DNA of 64,000 bases, taken from NCBI GenBank assembly GCA_047495785.1, contig JBLDXI010000001.1, forward strand, positions 4,898,001 to 4,962,000, read 5' to 3'. Within the stretch, counting starts at the first letter, position 1; every line of letters starts with the position of its first letter. This stretch comes from Lepidodermella squamata (taxonomy: Eukaryota > Animalia > Gastrotricha). Below are positions 39,700 to 50,177 of this stretch, in pieces. Below the pieces are notes generated by a model that did no database searches, was not told where the DNA came from, and saw only the letters and a program-made list of their open reading frames with translations. A program made the position numbers and the translations under genes.

Positions 39700-42600
39700 T
39701 TATTTGCTGGGACAGTTTTTGCGATTGTGACCCGGCTGGCCGCATTGGCCGCATTTGCGCTGCTTCGGCCCGGTCGGCGAGTCGCAACCGCCCCCGTCAT
39801 CGAAATCACCCCCGCCAAACGACCGTTTCGCACCTCGACCCCGCCCAGCACCACCACCGGCTCCACCTCCGCCGCCGCCGCCACCCCGATGCCCGCCCCG
39901 ACTTCCCGCCGCGTGGCCCCCGCCCAGGAATCCGAGTTGGGTGACCGGGTACTGGGGCGACTTCGCCCTGCCGCGACCACCACCCGAATACGAAGACCCG
40001 CCGCCCCTGGTGCCTCCAGACTGGTACCCGCCCCGGTAACTGGACCCGCCAAACCCACCTGACCCACCGGCGGCATTACTGCTGCCCCCAGCATCACCAT
40101 CGCCATCGGCCCACCCGTTCCACTTGCCGCAACCGCCCTCGCCCGGCTTGCGGCACGACCAGAACGCTTTGCCCGCATTTTGGCCGTTTTTACACGTCAG
40201 CTTACTGCACGGCTGTCCGCAGTCGGCGCACTTCTTCTGCTGGGAGTTGCCCTGCCGCTGGGTCTGCTGGTCACCCCCGCCGCCGCCGCCGTCTTCGTCC
40301 CACAGGAAAAAGTCGCACAGGTTACCGCCGCATTTGTAGAACTGGCGGCCCTGGTTCGGACCTTCCTTGCGGACGGTCAGTTTCGACGCCGGTTTTTGGC
40401 ACGTGCACAGTACCGAATTCGGGCTGCCGGGCTGGAACTGATCAGCGTTGTTGTTGTTGTTATTATTGTAGTTGTTGTTGCTGTTAGGAGGTCGGTTGAA
40501 ATTCGAGTTGTTCGCTATCGCAAAATTGTTCTGTGGTTGTTGTTGGCTGACAACTGCTGGTATTAGTGCGTTGTTTGCTGGTTGGCGCTGTTGCAACGCT
40601 GTGCTTTGATTGTTCATCGAGTTCGCAGGCCGTGATGAAGTTGAGGCTAACGAGCGGATGCCGAGCAGCTCGTAGAAGGCCGGCTCGCAGCCGCCTAAAC
40701 AGCACCGGCGTTGCTGCTCCAGTCCGGCTGGTGTTTCTTCGCGCTTGAACTGCATCTCGACGAGATGAGGGTGCGACGAACACTAAGAGGGGTAGTAACA
40801 ATCACAATAACAGTGAGCGTTAATCACATTTGGGAAATAGTAATCAAAGGCTATATGATCGAATATGATCGAAAAAACACCAAAAGCGGCGAAACTGAGA
40901 GATGACTTCAACAGCTACAATACTTATTTGCGAAACGCCTAGAAATTGCTTATCTCACATCATCTCTTCACCTCTCTTCACTAAAATCGATAATGATTGG
41001 CACTTATTTTTCATCGCAAGAATAACCTGATTTTTTCTCTATTTCAAAGTGTGTTATCTGCTTCTTTCTTTCGGGCTACGACAAACGATTTTGCGACAGA
41101 ATTGAGCTAGCTTTCGAAATTGCTTTCGAAGCGCCGCGTCTCGAATAGTCCGACAACATGATCGTTGGTCGGTGCGTCGAACGAGAAGCCTAAGCGATCA
41201 CCGCCCAAGTCAACTCGGACCACGCCATCATGCCAAAACCACCTAGGCGAAAAATGTATCGCCATATCGCAAGAATTACTATTGGAGGCCGGGTGAACTA
41301 TTGGTCGAAGCTATGTGGCCGATTTGTAGCTACGAAGTTAGTACAAGTGAGACGTGTGAAATGAGACCGTTGATGGTAATAACATCAACTGAACGCCCCA
41401 GCCGATCATTTGCTGGCGGATTCCTATCGATCAACTCGATATGGCTTCCAATTTATATGCCTTTTCTGCTGCTAATTTGTGGCGACGTAAGTAACAATAC
41501 TTATCAATTTTTCTTGTTTAACTTTTTGACTAACTTCGTCAATTTTTCAGATCGAATCCAATCCGGGGCCTTATGGAGAATCAAACGGTCAATCAGACAG
41601 ATCAGCGTTACGAAAACCACCTGTTTGGTTTGGGGAACTCAAAAATCGGATCGAAACTACTAATACAAGTAAGTCAATTCAAATTTGCTAATGCTTAAAG
41701 GTGGACCCTTTTCTATTTTGTTAACGCGATGGATTGGTAGAATCGCCGCGGGGCCAAGGGGGAACTCGATCCTTGTTCCGTCACTAGGACTTGAACCCAG
41801 TCCCGATAGCATTATAAATATACAGTAGCCCAACGACCCAACTGTCTTTGACGTTTAATACGAATCGCTAATTCTCAAATTTTCAAATAAGGTGTCGCTC
41901 CTCGCCAAGTTTTGGAGGTGTAAATATGAATAATGCGATGAGCAAATTTTTCCTGACGAAGATCAACTAACACCAATAAATATTGCGAAAATCATCGCAT
42001 TGAAGAAGGCACTACATCGACCTATGATCTGGCCGCCAGAGTAAAGGTATAGACTAAAGTTGCTAAATCCATTAAAAGACTGCAACATGGATAACCAAAA
42101 TGCAATTAGTTTTACTATGTATCCACTTCATTTCCAACTTATTACTATATATTACCATTACTAAGACGATACGATTTATTTGAGAAATTTTCGAAAACTT
42201 ACAGTTTGACAGGTCTGCGGCAGGAGGGTGACTTTTTGCACGCTGTCGGGCAGGAAGATGGACAGCTTGCAGTTGGGATAGCCCATGCAGCCGAAGAACA
42301 GGCCGCCGTTCTTGGTCGTGCGCAACGTCACGTCGCCCTTGCACGCCGGGCAGTTGCCCAGCTTCGTCGAGCTCTGGTCGAGCAGGAAGCCCAAATCGCC
42401 GCCTGGGCCCGCACCCGGACCAGGTCCTCCGGGTCCTCCTCCTCCGCCGCCGCCGCCACCGTCGTCAGGGTTATCAGCGCCCCAATCGACCTCGTTCTCA
42501 TCGCCATTGCCGTTGTTGGGCATGCCACCTATTAGGAAAATGAGCTATTTATTCTCTACTACGAAAAAATTAAAATCCCAAATTGTCATAAACTGGGAGC

Positions 42601-45600
42601 CGACGGAAAGACGACGAATTACAGGTAACAAGTAATGGCTTTCTAATCACGACTTCCAAACGGTCTTACAGTGACCGATCTTTTAAACATGTTTGTATCT
42701 GTAACGTGACATGGCTGATTTTCTAGTAGCCAATTTGGAGGTAAGGGAAATGATTTGCTCAGAAAACCAACATTTCATCATTTTCTACCTCCTGATTTTG
42801 ATACATAATAGGTTTTATTCCCTCCCCCATCAAAAAAATCTAGGTGAAAATGGCATGTTAAGAGTCAGATTGCGACTCGTTCTACGAACGTTAGAGTTCA
42901 TGATTTTATGCGGTTAATTAAATTTCAAGCAATAATTTCGAAAAATCAGGGTAAGCTTCGAGTTTTCAGATTTTCAAACATGGAAAAACTGTCTTGATCC
43001 AAACAGCCGTTGCGGTATCATATAACATACTTGTAAAGTAAAGGGTGAAATTACCTAACAAATACCGCCCAACACTTTCGTCGAGTTTTTTGTAATTTTC
43101 GGCAGCTAACCGGAAAATCTCCTGGTACTTGGCGATGTAAGTCGCCAGCACATCGGCCGCCTGGGCGGTTCCGTCGCAGATGCGCTGCAAATCGGCCTCG
43201 AACTCGGCTCTCAGATTCGGCTTCGACATCTGGAAACCCATCGAGTCGTAGCCCTCGACGAGGCCCATGCCGAGATGCCCGGGCGTGAAACGCTTCTCAT
43301 TCGTCACGCCCACGTAGAACCGCTGTTGAATCTTGTCGATGTGCTCCGCATGCGTCGCATCAGTCCCGATGCCGTGTTTCTCCATCAGCGCGATCAGATC
43401 GGCTTCGGTTAGCAGCGGCGGGGGTGCTGTTTGACCGCCTTGAATCTTAAAAAATATATCGAATAATTTTGAAATCCGAGAACAATCGAAATCTCGAAAT
43501 TCTCTTTTCGACAATTTTCACCTCGCTGTTCTTATTTTTACTCAAAATTTCCGTCAAATTTTGCAAGAAAACTTACATCGAGAAAAGTAGGCTCGAAGAC
43601 TTGGCCCTGCTGGTACTCGGGGATGGTGCGCTCGCTCCAGCGGTCGTACGGGTACACCTCGAGGTAGTTGAGCGCGAGGACGGTGAGGCCACTGGCGGTG
43701 AACGCCTCGCCGGCCATCTCCGCCTCGACGACGTACTCCTTGCCCTCGGCGTCGGCCGAGCAGCACGCGAGGAAGTGCCGCGTGATCAGCTCGTAAAGCC
43801 GCCACTCGTCGTTGCTCGCCAGCTCGTTCTGCCGCACGCACTTGGTCGGGTGGATCGGCGGATGCGCGTTATCCGTCTTCTTGCCATTCCGCGGCCTCGC
43901 ACCGCCCTGGTCAGAGCAGAGCAACAATGAGTTCAAGGTCTAAATCTTTTCAAGATATTTCACGCCTCCCTGAATTATTTAAATTCTCAACATTATAATA
44001 CTTCTGGTGAAGCTTCCGACAATATCGAAAACACAATTTCAAGTTTCATCAATCAAACATAATTAATAAAACATTAAAACAATCAACCAGGAGTTCAGGG
44101 TCTAAATCTTTTCAAGATAAGTACAACTCATTACATATTTGAAGTTCTCAGAACCGAATATTTCTGGTGCCGCTGCCGACAAGATTGGAATCACAATTTC
44201 AAAAATTTCAGATATCAGTTTCTCATTTCGACTATTTTCCTGTTAAAGCCTTCAAAATGGTTGAACCATCAAACTTCGAAAACCCGATCAAACAAGAACA
44301 CTCCTCTTCGTTTTTCCGACTTTATCTTCAAATTATGGCTCAAGTTAGGACATGGAAATTGGGAAATTTGGAGTTGAAGGCAAATTTAATGAACTAATTG
44401 AATAGAATAGATTGTCGAATTCAACAGCTAGACAAATAATTGCTGATAATGACTTTTCTAATGAGAATGAGCTCATGAAGATCACCAACCTGTTGCAGTA
44501 TGCCGGCGGCGAAATTGCCCCACGCCTCGTGATTCGTGTGCTGTTCGATGAGCGCGTCCAGTTTGAGCTCGCGCGGGAAAATGTTCGTCTCTGTACGCGG
44601 GTAAGATATGATACCGCGAGTGTACAGCGCTTCGGCGAGCGTCATCGCAGTTTTCGCCGTCATGCGCAACTTACGCACGGCCAGTTTTTCCATTTCGACA
44701 GTATCGAGTGCCTGCGGACGCCATTTCTGCTTCGGCTTGCTTTGCACAGATGTCACCTACATATCAAAACTAGTTTTATATCAGTCCGAAACAATTCAGT
44801 AAAATCATTGAGCAAAAGCCATGAACCGGACATATCAAGCCTTAATTTGTCAATTTAAAATTCAAAAGCAATAATGTGAGTTCAACATTTCCAGTGAAAC
44901 CAAATTATTCATTCGAACTAAAAATGGGAAATTATCACCGAACTTCTACAACTTTAAAAAATCTCATGAAAAATCCGCCATCCTCCACTGATTCGTCCAA
45001 AAATTCTTGTGTTAACTTAGTTATTTCATTTCTAAAATCAATCGTGATTGTGGATGTGAAAATTGAAGAAAAATTACCGTAGCTCGGCCGCAGGCCTGCA
45101 ATATGTCGAGAATAATTCGCACAATTTGCTCGTCAAAAATTCGCACTCGCCCCCAGTTGAAATCGGCAACCTCGTTTCTAACCGAATGTGTCACTAATAA
45201 AATCGAAAATTTATCAAAATGTTCAATCAACTGAAAATCTTAACGAACTTTTAATTTTCCAGAAATCTTCGACAACAAAATCTTGAATTTGTTTATAGCG
45301 ATCAACAACAAAACCGAGCGTCGGAAATTGACAACTGCCGTAACTTATCACTCGGCCTTCCAAAAACTGATTGTACAATTTTCGCAGCCGAAGAGTCTGA
45401 AATCGCGTAAAAGCGGCACCTAATCACCCTAGTTGCAAATATTTCTTCTCGAAATTGAAAAAATATCATTACCAGTTCGCAGATCGAGCTCGGATCTCAC
45501 ATCCACAGCTTGACTCATGCGTAAATCAGGCCGAATCAGGTTGTTGACGGCTCGCCATATCGCGCTATATAATGTAAATTTTTGCAACAGTTTAGGGACA

Positions 45601-46068
45601 CTGGCTTATAACATACGGAGCTGTCATTTCGGAGAATTTAGCTCGCCATACGTCGAGACGAGGATTTACAGTTTTGCATAAATCGATAATTTCATAGCCA
45701 ATATTTTCTCCCTCACGATCGCAATCGGTCCAAATAACGAGTTTTTGACACGATCTCGCCAGTTGAAGAAGGGTACTTTCAATGTCTTTCATATTGCTGG
45801 AGACCTGTTTGACAACAGGCGCTTCGAACAGCGCCAACAACGGCACAGTCTGCCAGTTTTTGTACTGAGGTGGGTACTCGGTTGACATTAAATGTCCTGA
45901 TACGGATGTCATGATCATCTGGCACTGTTGGCCCTGCAGTTGACACGGAAATTCATAGATTTTGTTGTACTTGGACTTTCCCTCGCGCCGCTGACACTGC
46001 CCTTTGCCTAGAATTGAAGCGATTGTGCTAGCGGCTGCGTTTTTCTCGGCGACGTTTAAAACACGCAT
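39700..46068 (-). CDS. TOP3A: DNA topoisomerase III alpha, multi-exon
   Basis: MRVLNVAEK, WTDCDREGENIG, SYGSCQFPTLGFVV, ISYPRTET (catalytic Tyr), GIGTDATH; C4 zinc finger, two GRF zinc fingers, RGG tract and terminal CCHC knuckle. Confidence 0.95.
41313..41668 (+). CDS. Putative spliced ORF containing a 2A/StopGo-like motif (exons ~41313-41486, 41551-41668; ends uncertain)
   Basis: ...FLLLICGD|GTAAGT..TGACTAAC..TTTTTCAG|IESNPGPYGESNGQ...; the 64-nt phase-0 intron has an ideal donor, branch point and acceptor. Confidence 0.6.
41778..41853 (-). other. Degenerate tRNA-like element (possible SINE head or pseudo-tRNA)
   Basis: Reverse complement CGTCA...CTGGGTTCAAGTCCTAG TGACG shows a T-arm/B-box and partial acceptor pairing; D and anticodon arms are poor. 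Confidence 0.35.
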
Positions 46069-46619
46069 CGTTTCAGATGATAGGCGCCGTACTAGCAGAC
46101 GAAAAATAACTGTCATAAACTGCTCTCAATAGATCAGGGGAAATTTTATGTCACATTTGATTAACAGACACTAAAAATAACATAAATAAAAGTGGTCAAG
46201 TTGGGTACGTCACAAACTGATGCCCAAGCATATCGTCGGGCAACTGGCGATTAAGCTTATAAATCCATCCATCCATCCGTGGTGCATCAGAACTCACTAG
46301 ATAGGTAATCGCTAGCCACTTGCTGTTTAGATATCTGAGAATCGCTACTTATATTATTCAACCGAAACCGAAGCATTACACATGCAACCGCCAATCGCAC
46401 TTTATTAAAATAAGCATATGGGCTGCGAGTGATAGAAAAACTGAAAGTTATCCCGCCTCGCATCACAAGCCCATAGTATTGAATGCAAAAATCGCTCGGT
46501 TTATTCCGGTTGGCAAAATCTGTATTCGATGCACGAGTGCGATCTGCGAGCGACCGAGGTGAGGTATTGGGGCGAGTCCGTATGTGTGCGTGATCCGGTG
46601 AATGCTTGCCCGCAGTTCA

Positions 46620-48353: not shown

Positions 48354-49205
48354 ATGGTTGCCGATATCGAGCTTGAAATCGTCGAACTTCTGGAGCAACT
48401 CGAAGAGGAGGTTGGGTCGCTGCCGACAGGAGAGACGAAAGAGAGGCTGCGACAAATTCAATCGAAACTGCAATTGAAGCTGCTAAAGAAAGAAGCCAGA
48501 AAGAAAAGAAGTGCAGAAGAGAAGGAGGAAGAAAAGCGAAAGCATCTGATGGAAAAGATGGTAAATGAAGACCGACTCCTTATAAAAGGTCTGGGCGAAA
48601 ATTGGAAGGAGGAGGTCAAAAAACTCCTCCCGGCTGACCTGCCACTCTGGAGACTAGAAGAAGAGAAGGACAAAGACGGGGCGGTGGTCATCGAATTCCT
48701 TCGAGACACGCAGAGGTCAAAGGCCCGAGTTCTAAACCTGGCGAAGCAGTGGAAAGAACCACTGAAAGCGGTAAAACCAGTCACGAAACACATGAAAGAA
48801 GTCAGAGAAATACTCGAGGAGAAGAAAGTCGAACTGGAAAGCGCGGGCACCCAAGGATTACAGGTCAGAGGAGCGAACATCTACCAGTACGACATCCCGC
48901 TCATCCGTTACTACTCGGACGCAAGTGAAATGGTGAAAATTCACAACCCGGTTGAAAACATCCAGGAGGAACCAACCGGAATAAAGTGCTTCACTTGCCA
49001 CGGCTATGGGCACATGTCATGGCAATGCGCAAACAACCAAGAGCCAGACAGAGGCAACGCGCCCAGAAACAACCAACTGCGACCGAACAACAACAGATAT
49101 CAAAACAACAACAACACTGGAAACAACAACTACCGCGGAAACGGTGGAAACAATCGGAACGACGGAAACTACGGAAACCGAGCGCCGTATGGACGCTGGA
49201 ACTAG
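48354..49205 (+). CDS. Retrotransposon ORF1/gag-like protein: coiled coil, CCHC zinc knuckle, N/G/R-rich tail
   Basis: 283-aa intact ORF with CFTCHGYGHMSWQC. Confidence 0.8.
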   Translation: MVADIELEIVELLEQLEEEVGSLPTGETKERLRQIQSKLQLKLLKKEARKKRSAEEKEEEKRKHLMEKMVNEDRLLIKGLGENWKEEVKKLLPADLPLWRLEEEKDKDGAVVIEFLRDTQRSKARVLNLAKQWKEPLKAVKPVTKHMKEVREILEEKKVELESAGTQGLQVRGANIYQYDIPLIRYYSDASEMVKIHNPVENIQEEPTGIKCFTCHGYGHMSWQCANNQEPDRGNAPRNNQLRPNNNRYQNNNNTGNNNYRGNGGNNRNDGNYGNRAPYGRWN

Positions 49206-49374
49206 GACTGGCTAAACCCACTCCCGCTTGAAAACCGTTTCGAACTGCTAACAGAAAATGACAACTCATCTGATGATTCGATTGTGAAGAAAGTGGAAGG
49301 CGAAGGAAAAACGAAATCTACAAGGCCCAAGAAAAGGGCAAGGGGTATGAAAATTAAAACAAAAAATTTGAAAA

Positions 49375-50177
49375 ATGTTTGCCATTCTGAAAACCAAGGT
49401 TTCTTCCTTCAAGTATTTAGGCAGCATAATAACAGATGACGGAAAAATTGACGCCGAACTAAAATCACGTATAGCAAAAGCCGGTAGTTGCTTTGGTGCA
49501 ATCAGTAAGTTCATGTGCAACCGAAACCATGTATCTCTTGGAATTAAATTGAAAATACTAAATTGTGTAATAATTCCGACACTAATGTACGCTAGCGAAT
49601 CCTGGAATTTGACCGAAGAACATGAGAGAAACCTAAACACACTCGAATATAAGTGGCTTAGGTGCATCTTAGGAATCACTGTTATGGATTATATTCCGAA
49701 TATAGACATAAGACTCTCAATGTGCGGCGGCGTGATAGAAGTGAGTAGATTAATAGAAAAACAACGCCTCAATTATCTCGGTCACATAATAAGAATGCAA
49801 ACCTATGTAGACAAAGACGGAAAGCCTCTCGAACCCGGCCCAGTGTACGACATATATAGATGGCAGACTCCAGAAGGTTGGGTCAGGCCAGTAGGAAAAC
49901 CTCAAATTTATTGGTTAAAATGCGTAGAAAGAAGCCTAATTAAAGTAGGCCTCACATCGAAAACAACTATTAGGAAAAAATCGATGGCTCTCGAGGACGA
50001 CCCAAGAAAGATGGGTCAAACTCGATTGAGATAACAGTAGAAGACGTGGACTGGCACGCCACAGAATTAACGGCATTAAATAGAGATGAATGGCAAACAA
50101 CGGTCTCAGAATTGGAAAATTATGAATTTTACGGTAAAAGCAAATTGCTAACTGCGGGGGTGGGCGTTTTTTCTTAA
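49375..50177 (+). pseudogene. C-terminal remnant of LINE ORF2 (post-RT region), frameshifted near 49975
   Basis: VSSFKYLGS, RLNYLGHIIR, RPVGKPQIYW, then ALNRDEW in a second frame; no YADD or endonuclease. Confidence 0.75.

Follow-up and report, generated by a model that had tools for sequence, protein, structure and literature searches.

In Lepidodermella squamata, the last intron of TOP3A harbours, in antisense, a genuine 2A-leader module, one of a kind found repeatedly in this genome: a hydrophobic exon 1 ending in ...CGD, a short phase-0 intron, and an exon 2 starting with IESNPGP, so that the ribosome-skipping (2A/StopGo) motif is encoded in two halves. The copy studied here lies in the window, i.e., the whole 64,000-nt stretch of contig JBLDXI010000001.1 that was analysed, and it is probably an orphan: a neutrally evolving 5′ leader left over from the 2A-leader genes or transposons of this genome.

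Anatomy of the split 2A unit and its host intron

The open frame of exon 1 begins immediately behind a TAG stop codon (41244–41246). The parts of the unit and its nearest surroundings, in window coordinates, are as follows:

41247–41486, + strand: open frame of exon 1, 80 codons, with ATGs at 41313 and 41361
41487–41550, + strand: predicted phase-0 intron of 64 nt, with a GTAAGT donor at 41487, a TGACTAAC branch site and a TTTTTCAG acceptor
41551–41668, + strand: exon 2, which starts with IESNPGP and continues with YGESNGQSDRSALRKPPVWFGELKNRIETTNT; its last base is the first of a codon
41669–41691, + strand: second GTAAGT, a possible donor; an in-frame TAA at 41689–41691 closes the frame if this donor is unused
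41709–41844, no strand assigned: internal fragment of a SINE-like repeat, ~140 of ~320 bp, 86% identical
40783–42202, − strand: last intron of TOP3A, ~1.42 kb, which contains the 2A unit in antisense

Exon 1 translates to ...SFAGGFLSINSIWLPIYMPFLLLICGD, its last codon ending at 41486, and its 3′ end reads ...FLLLICGD; the hydrophobic run FLSINSIWLPIYMPFLLLICGD supplies the upstream half of the 2A peptide, and hydropathy on the Kyte–Doolittle scale reaches its maximum, 2.0, over IWLPIYMPFLLLICG. The LLLICGD run upstream of the motif resembles those of active 2As, whose activity is context-dependent. The predicted intron has the features expected of one, namely GT..AG ends, a branch site (41527–41534), a pyrimidine tract, an acceptor that terminates at 41550, and a length usual for this genome. 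Codons 41551–41667 of exon 2 translate to IESNPGPYGESNGQSDRSALRKPPVWFGELKNRIETTNT, with NPG/P at 41560–41571.

When the stretch 41487–41550 is spliced out in silico, the two halves join to give GDIESNPGP, a textbook version of the C-terminal core D(V/I)ExNPG/P. The initial annotation had proposed that splicing creates the 2A core, and this holds for the in-silico transcript, given the canonical intron signals; each sequence detail that it listed is present, base for base. It had also pointed to the unspliced RNA. Again this is correct: the intron is 64 nt long and its retention therefore changes the frame, the RNA then reading GDVSNN.... Beyond the donor at 41669, the search for a third exon gave no convincing candidate and no family homology downstream. 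A perfect 11-nt inverted repeat links exon 1 (41332–41342) with the branch-site region of the intron (41529–41539), and may be due to chance.

As for the host locus, it is a minus-strand TOP3A, and by Pfam its exons on either side of the intron carry Toprim, Topoisom_bac, Zn_ribbon_Top1 and GRF finger domains; the antisense nesting given in the initial annotation is correct. The intron is the last of the gene, with the donor GT at 42202–42201 and the acceptor at 40783 or, alternatively, at 40750. TOP3A has at least seven exons in this genome (window 39700–46116) and its last intron measures 1.4 kb; in a metagenome-derived relative, the gene (L037:5809–8741) is called in three coding blocks with gaps of ~30–100 nt.

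The SINE fragment starts 18 bases beyond the stop codon of the 2A unit. It belongs to a repeat family with more than 40 genomic copies, from which it is 14% diverged, and a tRNA-like box, GGTTCAAGTCC, occurs in it in the reverse direction. The remaining half of the SINE is absent upstream of the unit, and therefore no boundary of a nested insertion can be drawn. Between 40000 and 43000, ARAGORN finds no tRNA, and the Rfam scan returns a single sub-threshold match, to snoU13, located on the SINE fragment. Elsewhere in the window, at 48354–50034 (+ strand), lies the remnant of a non-LTR retrotransposon, composed of a 283-aa gag-like ORF with CCHC zinc knuckles and a piece of 219 aa that looks like the C-terminal portion of a reverse transcriptase; both lack a Pfam match.

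Split 2A leaders across the genome

Is the window unit alone? The question was addressed with a census of DNA patterns over the 121-Mb assembly, in which the reversed pattern served as control. The strict pattern [IV]ExNPGP has 25 matches in the genome versus one for the control, and when a preceding YAG is demanded, the figures become six and zero. The 25 strict matches divide into 18 unsplit motifs, six split ones, the window unit included, and one junk match. The search for paralogous split motifs, which the initial annotation had suggested, has thus yielded five further cases, with the intron at the identical D/[IV] junction. The six split motifs are given below with what the five new ones head:

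Window unit: FLLLICGD, intron of 64 nt, IESNPGP
L019 (G000:C9:3391873–3393450, − strand): NLLQLCGD, intron of 51 nt, IESNPGP; 475 aa, intact, single copy
L021 (G000:C28:~108900–110580): NWLLLCGD, intron of 202 nt, IEANPGP; 423 aa, intact, single copy
L018 (C4:1030189) and L020 (C16:415170): LLLLRSGD, intron of 59 nt, VERNPGP; P-like transposase loci
L022 (C29:3638080): TLLLRSGD, intron of 53 nt, VESNPGP; P-like transposase locus

In every one of the six, a phase-0 GT..AG intron separates D from I or V, and the upstream exon, 51–202 nt away, terminates with ...(C/S)GD exactly at the GT donor, preceded by a hydrophobic run.

These regularities bear on the simplest alternative, namely an NPGP-like string that happens to lie beside fortuitous GT and AG dinucleotides. 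In its favour, the halves of the motif are short, and the second half has one control match genome-wide. However, the pattern controls and the shared architecture of all six cases effectively refute it: the whole split configuration is expected by chance, on a rough estimate, fewer than 0.001 times per genome. In addition, ten of the looser ExNPGP matches were inspected and none has the features of a split 2A; these ten look like chance. For the window unit, coincidence is scarcely credible.

Most of the other loose matches have in common one recurring, tandemly spaced, tRNA-like sequence. Long tandem arrays, seen as pattern matches only, occur at C9:5.55–5.65 Mb, C1:5.08–5.18 Mb and C10:2.43–2.73 Mb (G000), with units of ~3.4, 6 and 4.5 kb, respectively, and the tRNA-like GAATTGAACCCGGGACC is common to all three.

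What do the 2A leaders of this genome precede? Among the unsplit motifs, those whose families were scanned with Pfam (L011–L017) lead into ORFs for reverse transcriptase and, in a single case, APE, and they are the known non-LTR type of 2A leader. The split ones are different in what they head. Three (L018, L020 and L022) enter P-like transposases, and two (L019 and L021) enter a low-copy family of 420–480-aa proteins; beyond the motif, the open frames of L018–L022 extend for 420–495 codons, L020 being degenerate.

L018 and L022 are P-element-like transposases by Pfam (PF12017, PF21787, PF21788), and L020 is a degenerate copy of L018. In both L018 and L022, an in-frame TAG stop stands immediately before the V of VE[RS]NPGP, and therefore the 2A motif is attainable there by splicing only. 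A contig of another organism that encodes a P-like transposase (55% identity) has no NPGP in the 1.2 kb upstream.

L019 and L021 are paralogues, 32% identical, and ahead of each come a short, hydrophobic leader and a 2A divided by an intron. Their conserved blocks include GKTGHxLASQFAVI, and pseudogene fragments of the family are found on C7, C21 and C42. Pfam detects no domain in either protein, L019 has no relatives among 1.84 billion representative proteins, and feature searches with both returned no usable leads or only weak ones, all below 0.9. Their predicted structure is of too low a quality for a fold search (mean pLDDT 39). The two were also considered as ORF1s of non-LTR elements, and this assignment was rejected: the APE ORF behind L021 is part of another, multicopy element, copies of which are 100% identical and start ~450 nt beyond the L021 ORF. 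L019 and L021 therefore count as single-copy genes with no function assigned.

The neighbouring element, at L021:4725–6023 (G000:C28:~111033 onward), is itself a multicopy retrotransposon of the APE type, and a young one: the copies on C54 and C15 are 100% identical. Over the initial ~45 nt, the element matches a sequence that repeats every 8.4 kb on C22, possibly in rDNA units, which suggests an element that targets rDNA.

The window unit, its X1 allele and its origin

With L019 and L021, the window unit shares the wording CGD/IE[SA]NPGP, and the likeness is limited to the leader and 18 residues of exon 2. The window copy stops after 39–47 codons of exon 2. Downstream on the + strand there is no transposase, no body of the L019/L021 kind and no member of any Pfam family, nor is there an ORF1 or an APE-RT ORF; by DNA and by protein comparison alike, the genome has just one copy of the unit, which is thus not multicopy as a non-LTR element is. 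Its unspliced 120-aa ORF has no homologue among 5.8 billion proteins.

Two other sources of a leader without a body have to be weighed. One is an RNA virus. GDIESNPGP is a classical viral 2A nonapeptide, with ~99% skipping in published tables (PMC8623073), and iflaviruses, dicistroviruses and cypoviruses all use it, so that the unit could be an endogenous fragment of a virus of one of these types. Against this stand an intron with consensus signals within the motif, the lack of viral protein homology on either side, where no capsid or polymerase remnants are seen, and the fact that what follows the paralogous split motifs is transposases and ORFs of cellular type instead of viral polyproteins. 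A viral origin is accordingly very improbable.

The other source is a DNA transposon, P-like or not, that became non-autonomous by internal deletion and kept only its 5′ leader. Split 2A leaders do occur on P-like elements of this genome, and P-type elements typically undergo internal deletion. However, the leader in the window is of the CGD/IE type, whereas the P-like copies are of the RSGD/VE type. Moreover, the window holds no transposase homology, no inverted terminal repeats or target-site duplications surround the unit, and its DNA is similar to that of no other element. This origin is distinctly unlikely.

How does the unit fare in other genomes? Conservation was assessed in one other individual (X1, the one sequencing run that covers the region) and in one distant relative. 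The depth of X1 is even across exons and introns of the TOP3A region, and X1 is therefore DNA from a near-identical individual or strain. An X1 contig spans 41371–41917 at full local depth (53) and differs from the reference at seven sites in 547 nt, among them the following:

41542, A>T: inside the predicted intron
41563, C>T: CCG (Pro) becomes TCG (Ser), and NPGP becomes NSGP
41578–41579, GA>TG: GAA becomes a TGA stop, at codon 10 of exon 2

The X1 allele therefore lacks the 2A core, reading NSGP. Its seven differences in 547 nt are about the level of the surrounding intronic background; the exons of TOP3A differ by 0–0.3%, and their sole indel is in frame. The canonical reference allele is presumably the ancestral one; that of X1 is a null.

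In the distant relative, identity amounts to 70% over the Toprim domain of TOP3A and to 41% over the last exon. Its orthologous intron is shorter than 100 nt with nothing nested inside, and the 2A unit is absent. Thus, as far as these two comparisons and the homology searches reach, the intact frame is kept nowhere else: X1 has NSGP and the premature TGA, the relative has a short intron, and homologues are lacking. Such a lack of conservation is one of the outcomes that the initial annotation had named as refuting its reading.

The initial annotation had called the unit a domesticated, splicing-gated recoding element. "Domesticated" does not agree with a unit that has no downstream gene body and no homologues, and whose motif and frame are broken in X1. 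"Splicing-gated" describes the trivial outcome of any coding intron, and nothing points to regulated splicing here.

Since the leader runs into no gene body and its copy in the other individual is broken, the unit is most likely a decaying leftover and not a working gene. The orphan would consist of exon 1 with a possible promoter region, the intron, and exon 2 over 39 codons, with no protein body. Most likely, a 2A-leader gene or transposon was inserted or duplicated into the TOP3A intron and lost its body later, perhaps when a deletion cut short the adjacent SINE as well; the antisense placement would be the orientation tolerated for an insert with strong splice sites. The unit would now be evolving neutrally. 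If the reference allele is transcribed, its intron is probably removed, and the ribosome would then probably free a leader of 48–64 aa ending in ...NPG before making a peptide of ~40 aa, to which no function is assigned.

Some observations do not sit easily with a relic. The reference allele is flawless, with open frames, consensus splice signals and a perfect motif, and the genome contains no parent copy; if a fragment is neutral and has outlived every relative, decay would be expected. The neighbouring SINE is 14% diverged, and neither terminal repeats nor target-site duplications mark an insertion. A flawless allele with no surviving parent is therefore either young, its parent having been lost, or was under constraint until recently.

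The flawless reference allele also lends something to the opposite reading, in which the unit is a live, lineage-specific small gene: splicing would make the StopGo site, a hydrophobic leader would be produced together with either a short peptide or, given further exons, a longer protein, and the X1 allele would be a tolerated null. To the intact reference allele can be added the further consensus donor at 41669, an AATAAA near 41966, and the existence in this genome of L019 and L021 as intact single-copy genes with this type of leader. However, the X1 allele breaks motif and frame at full depth and its divergence is that of neutral background, no homologous coding exon lies downstream, no homologue was found anywhere searched, and the unit is missing from the intron of the relative. 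A live gene is thus doubtful. More doubtful still is the fuller version, in which the reference allele represents a micro-gene, living and polymorphic between strains, with a splice-made StopGo site, and as such part of a genome-wide class of transposases and an unknown protein family behind split 2As. The orphan relic remains the reading that we prefer.

Split leaders compared with described StopGo systems

The prevailing view of 2A/StopGo is that of a viral device, seldom met in cellular genes, and in genomes it is known chiefly from non-LTR retrotransposons. Within such retrotransposons, 2A-like leaders have been described at the N-terminus of the ORFs of APE-type elements (Odon et al. 2013, PMC3708506), and in sea urchins 2A-like sequences serve as N-terminal signal sequences of genes (Roulston et al. 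2016, PMC4981915). The window unit resembles both in that a hydrophobic N-terminal stretch runs into GD(V/I)ExNPGP at the start of the coding sequence, and the unsplit L011–L017 place the same kind of leader before RT and APE ORFs in this very genome. Unlike them, the window motif has an intron between D and I, exists as a single copy, and is followed by no ORF1, RT or other body.

With the 2As of the viruses EoPV, PnPV and BmCPV-1, the likeness is one of sequence alone: the spliced C-terminal nonapeptide is identical, and the LLxCGD of the window resembles the LLTCGD of T2A. However, the window 2A is cellular DNA with an intron, and there is no polyprotein. The closest counterparts are the split 2As of the same genome, L018–L022, which are built alike and have their phase-0 intron at the identical place, L019 and L021 also sharing the wording around the junction; the window copy differs from all of them in ending so early, with no further similarity. 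Another comparison is with intron 3 of the Drosophila P element, which is spliced specifically in the germline. In both cases, removal of an intron has to precede the making of the downstream protein, and this is the sole sense in which "splicing-gated" fits the window unit; the window locus, unlike the P element, has no transposase and no sign of regulated splicing.

The 2A literature examined makes no mention of an intron within a 2A motif or of its splicing, and as for a link between NPGP or 2A-like sequences and transposases, only a general recoding review was found. The 2A papers searched contain no case of a 2A core that an intron splits at a constant junction and that stands before DNA-transposase genes and an unknown gene family.

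The window locus, an orphan with a null allele, is the weakest exemplar of the class and is not to be cited as a domesticated recoding gene. The informative exemplars of a splice-assembled 2A are L019, L021 and the P-like loci. If RNA confirms split 2A leaders, protein-level motif scans of unspliced DNA would be shown to miss such cases, and StopGo would gain a setting beyond those known so far.
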